This document shows positions 355 to 11,971 of a DNA stretch of 64,000 bases, one piece after another. The position numbers were made by a program, and so were the translations under genes. Position 1 is the stretch's first letter; every line of letters begins with the position of its first letter. Under the pieces are notes generated by a model. That model saw only the letters and a list, made by a program, of their open reading frames with translations, had not been told where the DNA came from and did not search any database. Source of the DNA: Sphaerodactylus townsendi. Lineage: Eukaryota. The DNA lies in NCBI RefSeq assembly GCF_021028975.2, contig NC_059425.1, positions 24,242,001 to 24,306,000 on the forward strand. The letters run 5' to 3'.

Positions 355-2121
355 TCAGAGTAAAGTAGAGTCTTGAGCAGCATCGATGCTCTCCAGCCCC
401 CCTGCTTCCCCCTTGGCACCCCTCGGGAGGGACCCTCTGACATACTGGAGGCAGGGGTAGCTCTTCCCCTCTGCCAATTCCTCCACAGGGTTTGAGAAGT
501 CCTGACAGAAGCGAATTCGGTGTTGACGGTCTGGAGTTCTGCCTGGCCCGTTCCCCTCTTGGTAACTGGTGAAGCTAAAGCCTCCCAGTCTGCCAGTCTG
601 GAGGGGTTCCTTCCCTAGGGTCTTCTCTTGCCCGGAGTTCTTGCGGAGCAGGCTGTCTAACATCTTCTGGGCGGCCTGATAATCTAGGTGGGATCCCGAT
701 GCCTTCTCCATCAAGCCTGGGCACCACGAGACCTCGCCGTCGTCAGAACTCTCAGAGCTGCTGACCTCTGGGACTCGCTCGAGTGGCCCGCTTGGTGGAA
801 CGCCAGAGGGGGAAGTAGGATGCACCAATCCAAAGACAACAGACTCTGGGCCTGGCAAAGGAGGGAAACTGCTAGGGCCTGAGGGAGCCACCAGGGCCTC
901 TTGCCTCAAGTATAAGAAGCGTGGTGTTGGGAGAGGGCACAGCGGAGTTGTTTCCTCTCCACTGTACTCGCCCTCTGCCGAGTTGACGTGCTCAACCGAG
1001 AATTTTGTGGATGTCTGCTTCCAAGGCTTGAAGGCGGTCACCTGGGTGTGGTTTCTGCAATGCCTGCTGGGTACTTCTGGTGGTGGGGATAGGGCTTTGT
1101 AGCTCAGCAGTGGGATCTCCTCTCCATTGGGGGTAGCTGTGTCTGACTCAGAGCTGCAGCCTAACTTACTGGTTTCAGTGGCCGAGTCAAACTGGATGGG
1201 TGTGGGGTGAGCGTCGGAGATGCCATCCCTGAAATCAGGAGGGGGTACGATGTCCAGGATGGTCAGCGAACAAAAGCTGTCAGGGGAGTCGGCCTTTTCG
1301 TGCTGGTGCTCCGCAGTGGATTTGGACAGCAGTCCTGAGATCTGAAAAAGGTCAAAGAAGAAGAGTTTGAATTTATACCTCACCTTTCTCTCATGTGAGT
1401 AGTCTCAAAGTGGCTTACAGTCGCCTTCCCTTCCTCTCCCCACAAACAGACATCTTGTGAGGTAGGTACAGCTGTGGGAATTCAGAGAAAACTGTTATTA
1501 GCCAAAGGTCACCCAGCAGGTTTTCTGCGTAGGAGTAGGGAAATCACCACCAGGAAATCACCACCAGTCCACCAGAAAAGAGTCTGCCACTCATGTGCCC
1601 CTCCCCTCCCCTCCCATCCCTTGAATGCCACCCCTCACTCGCTCCCCTCCCTCTCCTCCCTTGCATGCCACCCCTCCCTTTCCCCCTCCCTCTACTAGGG
1701 TGGGCGGACCATGTCCAGGTGCCGGCCTCCTCCCCTTCCCTCGTATACCATCCCTGGTCTTGGCTATGGGTCAATGGGGGAGCTGAGAGACGCCTGCCAT
1801 GTCTCCAGATTAGAGTTCACCGTTCTTAACCGCTACACACTTACTCTCTTAGGATTGAAAAGATACCACAGGCCAGTCAGACATGACTTCTGTGCAGACA
1901 AGCATACATTTTTATTGATTTCAAACCACAGGGATGGGTAACTGTAGTTTGGTGAGAACTGTAATTTGTAATTTGGTGATGTTGCTAAGAATTTTATGTT
2001 AGAGATACCTAAGCCCCTCACAGAATTACAGCTCCTGGGATTCCCTGAGGAGGACTGAGTACTATATCTATGTTAATTCTGTGATGTAGATACACAGTTC
2101 TCTTCTCTAGTACAGCCTTTT

Positions 2122-2156
<35 letters not shown>

Positions 2157-11100: not shown

Positions 11101-11971
11101 TCAGCTTCCTCCGTTTCATGTTGGGTGACTTCTTGGGGGCACTCAGATCTAGGCTGCTCGGGGGCTGCTTCTGTCGCTGCAGAGGACCAACAGGCCCAGG
11201 AGGAGGCCGAGATTCTCCTTCCAGCGAGCGTACAGTGATGGTCTCAATGGACTTTGCCTTCCGCAGCCGGTCACCTCTGGTAACTGCCCCGTTTTTCAAG
11301 ATCCCTTTGCTGGGGCCTGAAGCTGCAGTTTGGCGAGGTTGCCCTGGGGCAAGGATTTCGGCCTGCTCATTGAACATGAGACTGCGCTCTAGGCCGGGGG
11401 ACTTATACAGGCGTCTGTCAATGCTGTCGGTTTGACCTGGTAACAACTGGACTTCCTGATGGCCCTGGCGACGGGACAGCCGATCAGCGCTCTTGCTCTG
11501 GCCTTTCCTCAGCCGAACCATGGAACCAGATGGATCTCCCACCTTGTAGGCCACTTTCTGATCTCGGCCGTGATGGAAAGCACTGGCTTGACTTGAGATG
11601 TCCACGCAGGACTGAGAATGCTGAGAGTGAGGACTGGCCTTCAGGAAGGTCTTCTTGTTGAAACTGGCCTCTGAAGACCAAGATGCTGAGGAGGTGGAGG
11701 CTGTGGTGGAAGAGGACCAAGAGAGGGTAGAACCCCGATCACTGCGGCTGTCCGCCCACTGCTGGTGGCAGCTCCTCAGATCCATATCAGCAGCTCCCTT
11801 CCCCTCCTTGCCTGATGGCACGGGTGTGAAGAACTTCTCCATGACCTGCAGTTTACCAGCCGGCACTTCCACGCCTCCACCATGATTCCCCTCCCACTGG
11901 ATGGGAGCAAAAGCCTCTGCCTCTTGCTGGGCTTTCTTGTAGGACTTTCGGCGGATGGCTGAGGTGCTCAT
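355..11971 (-). CDS. Uncharacterized TJAP1/BEGAIN-family coiled-coil protein, ~906 aa; coding exons 11971-10526, 8179-8067, 7927-7861, 6724-6617, 1341-355
   Basis: Two long ORFs (10379-11971 and 355-1383) are joined by three small exons with canonical splice sites and matching phases (AAG|gtacaa; ccccag|TTG..AA|gtaagt; ctag|G..ATT|gtaagg; ctccag|GCT..AAC|gtgagt; ttttcag|ATC). The small exons encode ELESLKENFSKFQQDYSDTRQTNQLLEEKLQNIAQIMAEERQALNQRINELLERLVMSQNTLNTLEKLN, which resembles the TJAP1/BEGAIN coiled coil as I recall it. An AG sits 1 nt before the ATG, so an upstream 5' exon is likely. Confidence 0.75.
1352..1545 (-). mobile_element. Squam3-like tRNA-derived SINE, partial
   Basis: Has the (CTT) tail and body (cttcccttcctctccccacaaacagacatcttgtgaggtagg) shared with the other copies in the window. 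Confidence 0.65.
2121..2203. repeat. Compound trinucleotide microsatellite (ATG)n(AAG)n(AGG)n at a SINE tail
   Basis: Directly visible in the sequence. Confidence 0.9.
2204..2490 (-). mobile_element. Squam3-like SINE, full length
   Basis: On the minus strand: tRNA-like A box (TGGCGTAGTGG), B-box-like GGTTTGATTCC and a ggatataaatc tail. Near-identical to the copy at 24613-24906. Confidence 0.8.
3615..4144. mobile_element. Non-autonomous DNA transposon (hAT-like TIRs)
   Basis: Terminal inverted repeats CAGTGGTGGGATCC / GGATCCCACCTCTG. TSD is not clean. Confidence 0.55.
4370..6160 (-). mobile_element. Rex1/Babar-type LINE fragment (degenerate RT)
   Basis: Minus-strand motifs RIYSNHKPWMT, DYRP...IIMKCFEKLV, PQGCVLS..LFTLYTYDC and IIKFAD; many frameshifts. 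Confidence 0.7.
6940..7090 (-). mobile_element. 5S rRNA-headed Sauria-type SINE fragment
   Basis: On the minus strand ATCTCAGAAGCTAAGTAGGGCCGACCCTGG (5S-like), followed by aggcaatggcaagccatctctg. Confidence 0.55.
7095..7397 (+). mobile_element. CR1 LINE ORF2 fragment
   Basis: Encodes ERDLGVLVDHKLNMSQQ and [24 protein letters not shown]. Confidence 0.85.
7415..7640 (-). mobile_element. Squam3-like SINE, diverged
   Basis: aaatcaaacctggttctccggattagagtcc..ttaaccacaatgcc matches the other copies. Confidence 0.6.
10016..10213. mobile_element. Non-autonomous DNA element with AGGGTTGCCA/TGG(C/A)AACC termini; related copies at ~40198-40406, ~40995-41192 and ~43752-43962
   Basis: Shared core gggtataatgccatag..cacc..ttttctccaggtgaactaatct in all four copies. 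Confidence 0.6.

Follow-up and report, generated by a model that had tools for sequence, protein, structure and literature searches.

Within a 64,000-nucleotide stretch of the genome of the gecko Sphaerodactylus townsendi (contig NC_059425.1, positions 24,242,001 to 24,306,000; the whole stretch is hereafter termed the window), the minus strand carries at positions 355-11971 an intact protein-coding gene that NCBI lists as LOC125432739 and labels "uncharacterized". We consider it likely that this gene is a constrained third member of the BEGAIN/TJAP1 family situated beside CDCA5, that it is a paralogue and not an orthologue of the two familiar members, that it arose through whole-genome duplication, and that it is apparently missing from mammals. 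In mammals the family is regarded as consisting of BEGAIN and TJAP1 alone, and no mention of a third paralogue was found in the literature searched. In automated resources the gene already bears tags, namely the Pfam domain BEGAIN_coil and the NCBI name 'TJAP1-like'.

The gene model rests on a direct protein match. A word-index protein search with the minus-strand open reading frame (ORF) at 10379-11971 retrieved isoform X2 of LOC125432739 (P0001, 881 amino acids, aa) at 100% identity, and exact peptide matches of P0001 onto the window, together with a reading of the splice sites, yielded the exon map. Six coding exons extend from an ATG at 11971 to a stop codon at 355-357, all five introns follow GT..AG, and there are zero internal stops. 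The initial annotation, made from the letters alone, had proposed an intact minus-strand gene over the same interval, which the protein match, the introns, and the open frame bear out; its estimate of 5 exons and ~906 aa was slightly off because a 35-nucleotide (nt) exon had been missed, the actual lengths being 921 aa for isoform X1 and 881 aa for isoform X2.

All six exons lie on the minus strand. Exon 1 (10526-11971; aa 1-482) supplies the ATG and a long disordered N-terminal arm, and ends at the donor AAG/GTACAA. The overlooked exon 2 (8835-8869; 35 nt, aa 483-494) is bounded by the acceptor ctccag/GAATTT and the donor AT/gtgagt. The coiled coil begins in exon 3 (8067-8189; aa 494-535), which forms part of the BEGAIN_coil match, continues through exon 4 (7861-7927; 67 nt, aa 535-557), which encodes FQQDYSDTRQTNQLLEEKLQNI, and ends in exon 5 (6617-6724; 108 nt, aa 558-593). 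These are the three small central exons to which the coil had originally been assigned, and the peptides quoted at that time are present, YSDTRQTNQLLEEKL in exon 4 and both EERQALNQRINELLERL and NTLNTLEKLN in exon 5. The last exon (358-1341, followed by the stop at 355-357) encodes a disordered C-terminal arm in which conserved islands occur and which terminates in QDSTLL. Within it, an optional 120-nt GC..AG intron (852-971, minus strand) is used by NCBI isoform X2 only, at the cost of 40 residues (..PRFLYLRQEALVAPS..). Because these residues are conserved in lizards and turtles, the 921-aa isoform X1 looks like the functional, conserved form.

Orthologues of the gene are distributed well beyond the squamates to which it had first been ascribed. 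Word-index searches took as queries exon 1, the coil region of a turtle, and a profile covering the coil together with the C-terminus; such searches reach only relatives that share 5-mers, within certain length ranges, and their E-values were computed at a database size of Z = 5.8e9. They returned orthologues from lizards (Lerista, Hemicordylus, Podarcis, Anolis, Sceloporus, Pogona, and Phrynocephalus) and turtles (Mauremys, Caretta, Lepidochelys, Chrysemys, Chelonia, and Platysternon), as well as from alligator, the sturgeon Acipenser sinensis, the paddlefish Polyodon spathula, and several Logan contigs. The names attached to some of them are misleading, such as 'cadherin-23' for Platysternon P0007 and 'unc-89-like' for Hemicordylus P0006. 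Over aa 517-593 of the coil, gecko and paddlefish are identical at 36 of 76 positions (47%) in an ungapped alignment. Podarcis, Mauremys, Chrysemys, sturgeon, and paddlefish also preserve the sizes of the three coil exons; that of exon 4 is retained in Podarcis, Mauremys, sturgeon, and paddlefish, and exon 5 has its 108 nt in Podarcis, in the two turtles, and in paddlefish. Individual models depart from this pattern: sturgeon model P0018 omits exon 5, yet the exon (RISELTEQLSSAQNTICTLETIN) exists in its locus (L004, ~14740-14850), where its 3′ half is repeated in part at ~15481, ~650 nt beyond; and in Chelonia mydas model P0022 six tandem 23-aa units (GGAENSQSAVHSNRIPDPPRTAP) replace exons 2-4, an annotation artefact.

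The coding sequence is under purifying selection, as judged from Nei-Gojobori ratios of nonsynonymous to synonymous substitution (dN/dS) of ~0.26-0.29. For exon 1, the window compared with a contig from a second gecko (L007) gave a dN/dS of 0.29 with a dS of 0.48 over 447 codons; for the coil plus C-terminal part, Mauremys compared with Chrysemys gave 0.26 over 397 codons. The part in the last exon gave 0.19 in turtles.

Membership in the BEGAIN/TJAP1 family is indicated foremost by a precomputed Pfam match to PF27583, "BEGAIN_coil", which is carried by nearly all orthologues at E<=1e-5 (the value to which an unmarked database hit was taken to correspond, the model being outside our local Pfam copy). 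Matching proteins come from gecko, Podarcis, Mauremys, Chrysemys, alligator, sturgeon, and paddlefish (P0001, P0008, P0021, P0018, P0029, P0030, P0023, and others). The position of the match, as judged from which truncated models retain it, tracks exons 3-4: the 167-aa alligator fragment carries it, and so do models with exons 3-4 (P0018, P0030), of which sturgeon P0018 skips exon 5, whereas it is missing from Platysternon P0007 and Pogona P0025, both of which are devoid of exons 3-4. Moreover, the Chrysemys orthologue P0023 is named "tight junction-associated protein 1-like" by NCBI. The coil had initially been aligned by eye to TJAP1, which it may resemble in sequence. The kinship to TJAP1 and BEGAIN that was then proposed has thus acquired significant matches and a similarity-based name, whereas the Pilt domain of TJAP1 failed to appear in the C-terminal halves even at E<=10. 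Taken with the genomic position described below, the Pfam matches and the naming indicate that the gene probably belongs to the BEGAIN/TJAP1 coiled-coil family.

The chromosomal setting provides the second line of evidence and concerns which member of the family this is. In the window, the gene is accompanied by CDCA5, a ZFPL1-like ORF, and VPS51. CDCA5 (sororin), which the initial annotation had placed beside it, is represented by an exon at 21124-21759 on the same minus strand, upstream, with a Pfam Sororin_middle match at E 2.4e-12; a VPS51 exon lies at 45433-45783 on the plus strand (VPS51_Exo84_N, E 1.1e-10). In Podarcis (L003) the sororin gene likewise precedes the gene on the same strand, and in sturgeon (L004) the order is sororin, the gene, and then a mitochondrial-carrier gene resembling SLC25A45. 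The adjacency to CDCA5 is at least as old as the ancestor shared by ray-finned fish and reptiles. In Mauremys (L001) and Chrysemys (L006) the gene is followed after ~1.5 kb by a ~745-aa gene of PA/Peptidase_M28/TFR_dimer composition, which is the architecture of NAALADL1; in paddlefish (L002) it is followed by an SLC25A45-like mitochondrial carrier (Mito_carr) and then a FERM gene with KRIT1_FRMD8_FERM_C, an FRMD8-like gene being near the locus in sturgeon as well; and in alligator (L005) it adjoins ATG2. Human CDCA5, NAALADL1, ZFPL1, VPS51, SLC25A45, FRMD8, and ATG2A all reside at 11q13.1, with CDCA5 and NAALADL1 as direct neighbours.

Human TJAP1 resides at 6p21.1 and BEGAIN at 14q32, and the regions 6p21.1, 11q13, and 14q32 are paralogous and have sets of ohnologues in common, KLC4/KLC2/KLC1 and PPP2R5D/B/C among them. 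Human BEGAIN lies near SLC25A47/SLC25A29 and DLK1/WDR25, with ATG2B in the same band. The gene had been proposed as the 11q13-type paralogue of the family, and the neighbourhood part of that proposal stands, an 11q13.1-type setting being conserved in six species; as for its origin in the two rounds (2R) of whole-genome duplication, we infer this as the most likely course. A position shared from sturgeon to gecko is strong evidence that the gene is the orthologue of neither TJAP1 nor BEGAIN. A relocated true orthologue of one or the other, for which no direct support was found, is scarcely credible when set against this adjacency, against NCBI labels that read 'uncharacterized' or '-like' and never BEGAIN or TJAP1, and against a 482-aa N-terminal exon and a QDST[LS]L end that are known from neither protein.

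A subtler rival accepts the family assignment and replaces the 2R origin with a small-scale duplication in an early bony vertebrate, the copy having landed beside CDCA5 by chance. The earliest lineage in which the gene was seen is the Acipenseriformes, no copy from shark, lamprey, coelacanth, or amphibian having come up in the word-limited searches, which is compatible with such an event. However, the landing site would have been the one other region paralogous to both 6p21.1 and 14q32, the SLC25A45-like carrier beside the gene mirrors SLC25A47/SLC25A29 near BEGAIN, and the ATG2 gene beside the alligator copy mirrors ATG2B at 14q32. Since these features make a chance insertion unparsimonious, we regard the small-scale duplicate as rather unlikely and retain whole-genome duplication as the preferred origin.

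The apparent loss in mammals follows from what the searches did and did not recover. No mammal, bird, or amphibian protein was returned by the word-index searches from exon 1, coil, or coil plus C-terminus, within the 5-mer and length limits given above. A 29-residue island of exon 1 is nearly invariant from sturgeon to gecko, such that a retained orthologue would share many 5-mers with it. No gene is known to lie between NAALADL1 and CDCA5 in the human genome. This arrangement at human 11q13.1 and the word-limited searches together suggest that the gene may have been lost in mammals.

Several results weigh against the picture of a long, ancient, mammal-lacking third family member, and they do so at different points. 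The word-limited searches behind the apparent absence from mammals missed BEGAIN and TJAP1 too. Regarding the family assignment, scans of single exons and full-length orthologues against the local Pfam-A assigned no family, and those of C-terminal halves returned sub-threshold generic coiled-coil models only. No Pilt (PF15453) match appeared in full-length orthologues at E<=0.1 or in eight C-terminal halves at E<=10, the presence of PF15453 in the local copy being unconfirmed. Feature comparisons in the ESM Atlas placed the protein in generic coiled-coil clusters only (0.88-0.91). Finally, the junction joining exon 1 to the coil rests on gene predictions, because several NCBI models begin 3′ of exon 1, namely those of Chrysemys, Lepidochelys, Sceloporus, Pogona, and paddlefish (including P0020, P0023, P0024, and P0029).

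The Pfam and atlas results, the latter with kazrin, NCKAP5, SOGA, and others as neighbours, could be read to mean that the likeness to BEGAIN and TJAP1 is one of generic coiled-coil composition and that the gene is unrelated and lineage-restricted. The same reading would accommodate the word-index searches, whose matches were orthologues of the gene and never included TJAP1 or BEGAIN, even at E<=10 for the coil. Profile searches of the PDB with both halves of the protein recovered no relative. Against the reading of generic composition stand the PF27583 matches in seven species and their dependence on exons 3-4, a naming by NCBI that is based on similarity, and a location that is the paralogous one predicted, while the searches that failed were constrained by shared 5-mers and by the database-size E-value. 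On balance, mere compositional likeness is very improbable, and we proceed with membership in the BEGAIN/TJAP1 family.

The downstream starts of the NCBI models raise a different question, namely, whether exon 1 and the coil and C-terminal exons are separate transcription units or products of alternative promoters, the 881/921-aa protein then being, in part at least, a fusion made by annotation and the main product a TJAP1-shaped protein of ~460 aa. The paddlefish locus (L002) lends itself to this explanation in that a tetraspanin gene, not CDCA5, lies upstream and intervenes, and no exon-1 motif occurs within 10 kb, unlike in sturgeon; this copy may be a second one from the acipenseriform genome duplication that has lost exon 1. 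The opposite is indicated by the arrangement in gecko, Podarcis, Mauremys, Chrysemys, and sturgeon, where exon 1 lies directly upstream of the coil exons on the same strand, by the conserved phase-0 K/GT donor at which exon 1 ends, with a stop two codons beyond it in the second gecko, by at least ten independent gene models that join exon 1 to the coil, and by the purifying selection on exon 1 itself. We therefore hold separate units to be unlikely and favor a single gene that spans all six exons.

Within this single-gene model, a role for alternative promoters that yield the long form together with a TJAP1-like short form is plausible. The Chrysemys locus (L006) illustrates the point: exon 1, with KGILKN and FLNEIT, sits at ~100-1300 (as against 10001), ~9.5 kb upstream of model P0023 and on the same strand, so that a P0023 lacking exon 1 could reflect either alternative promoter use or an annotation that is cut short. 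Two contigs also touch on this junction. The 661-aa product P0004, from a 2.5-kb Logan contig, was considered as a spliced transcript and rejected, being a read-through of exon 1 into the intron, and on contig L008 no coil exons were found within 1.6 kb downstream of exon 1.

The predicted architecture of the protein is that of a single long helix flanked by disordered arms. AlphaFold2, run on a seven-sequence alignment with the 881-aa form, gave a predicted local distance difference test score (pLDDT) below 50 for 702 of 881 residues. The principal ordered element is a helix at aa 513-591 (pLDDT ~92), which corresponds to the coil of exons 3-5. A second helix at aa 283-316 (pLDDT ~78-85) is the only part of exon 1 to rise above 50, in keeping with the extra disordered N-terminal exon of ~480 aa that had been anticipated, and a third at aa 774-789 (pLDDT ~66-70) comprises LDYQxAQKxLDSLL.

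Conservation within the arms is concentrated in short islands. The foremost in exon 1 is EK(L/M)xFSxFLNE(I/V)TxQ(V/I)xxPSxLxxLG (aa 293-314; 11030-11095, minus strand), defined by invariant alignment columns and coinciding with the predicted helix. The motif KGILKNG (aa 222-228; 11288-11308, minus strand) does not vary among lizards, turtles, and sturgeon. Other islands are KLQVMEKFFTP, SASWSSEAS, HSQSCVD, KGQSKSxDRL, (E)RSLxFNE, RKAKSIE, PPPxFxD, TAFxPWKQ, PRFLYLRQEALVAP, and an acidic serine cluster followed by VSW. At the C-terminus, every one of the 14 sauropsid models closes with QDST[LS]L, which fits, as a sequence pattern only, the class I PDZ-ligand consensus x-[S/T]-x-hydrophobic.

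A comparison with the two relatives delimits what is shared and what is distinctive. Like BEGAIN, the protein carries the PF27583 domain, and its short models have the same layout, in which the coiled coil sits close to the N-terminus and a long tail, disordered and Ser/Pro-rich, comes after it. Unlike BEGAIN, it is encoded beside CDCA5 and a NAALADL1-like gene, not DLK1/WDR25, and it possesses the additional N-terminal exon with conserved motifs of its own as well as the invariant sauropsid C-terminal end. From TJAP1/Pilt, whose name the Chrysemys orthologue bears, it differs in lacking a Pilt match in its C-terminal half at E<=10, in its synteny, and again in the extra N-terminal exon.

An adaptor role may be proposed by homology with BEGAIN, a postsynaptic scaffold associated with PSD-95 (PMC5066261, PMC10716515). 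The long helix at aa 513-591 probably forms a coiled-coil dimer; a complex prediction for a pair of aa 505-600 chains (score 0.06, no controls) speaks neither for nor against this. Such a dimer would hold together two long disordered arms with conserved short motifs, making the protein an adaptor whose arms recruit partners through these motifs. Candidate docking sites include KGILKN, the amphipathic helix KLxFSxFLNEIT, the acidic serine clusters, and the C-terminal -S-T-x-L.

Among these candidates, KGILKN invites comparison with interactors of protein phosphatase 1 (PP1) that combine SILK and RVxF motifs. The KGILK of human inhibitor-2 (PPP1R2) contacts the catalytic subunit PP1c (PMC3735429), and the gecko sequence matches it letter for letter. 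KGILKN satisfies the SILK pattern [GS]IL[KR] and is invariant in lizards, turtles, sturgeon, and one further fish. Two RVxF-like elements accompany it, RSLxF 25 residues upstream and K(L/M)xF ~70 residues downstream. No canonical RVxF motif of the form [R/K]x[V/I]x[F/W] lies C-terminal to KGILKN, as the downstream K(L/M)(R/K/Q)F does not fit; the upstream RSL(V/M/A)F fits better than this downstream candidate, although it carries L instead of V/I and lies N-terminal to KGILKN, which reverses the usual order. The divergent exon-1 ORFs P0014-P0017 from Logan contigs (e.g., L009), perhaps of snakes, which are 35-38% identical to the gecko sequence, show KGILKN and RSLxF degenerating together, to RAVLRN and HSPAF, respectively, with FLNEVT and KLRFSEFLNEVT kept. 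With PP1 regulators there is no overall homology, and the resemblance would be one of mechanism only.

On the strength of these motifs one could envisage the exon-1 arm as a PP1 docking module and the protein as a dimeric scaffold that would bring PP1 to PDZ/MAGUK complexes via -S-T-x-L, with the arm gained by this third ohnologue or retained by it alone, and the function lost in the mammalian lineage. Because the RVxF-like motifs are non-canonical and their order is unusual, we regard this scenario as doubtful and offer it tentatively.

If the main interpretation is correct, the third member, retained in reptiles and basal ray-finned fish, would complete the ohnologue set expected for the 6p21.1/11q13/14q32 paralogon and would serve as a natural outgroup for telling which traits of BEGAIN, a synaptic protein, and of TJAP1, a junction and Golgi protein, go back to their ancestor. 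It would also document one more gene loss in the mammalian lineage. Retention of a single ohnologue in some lineages is common, and there is no sign of a new kind of mechanism here. Concrete hypotheses about partners are provided by KGILKN, by the FLNEIT helix, and by the QDST[LS]L end.

Several minor features of the window complete the description. An ORF at 57024-57920 (minus strand) resembles a retroelement fragment by eye, a Pfam scan of its 57024-57452 portion giving no match. A similar retroelement-like ORF is found at 7112-7397 (plus strand), in the intron between exons 4 and 5. The large intron between exons 5 and 6 contains at 2073-2258 a long simple repeat of poly-T/poly-A type that reads as stretches of L, F, and I in translation.

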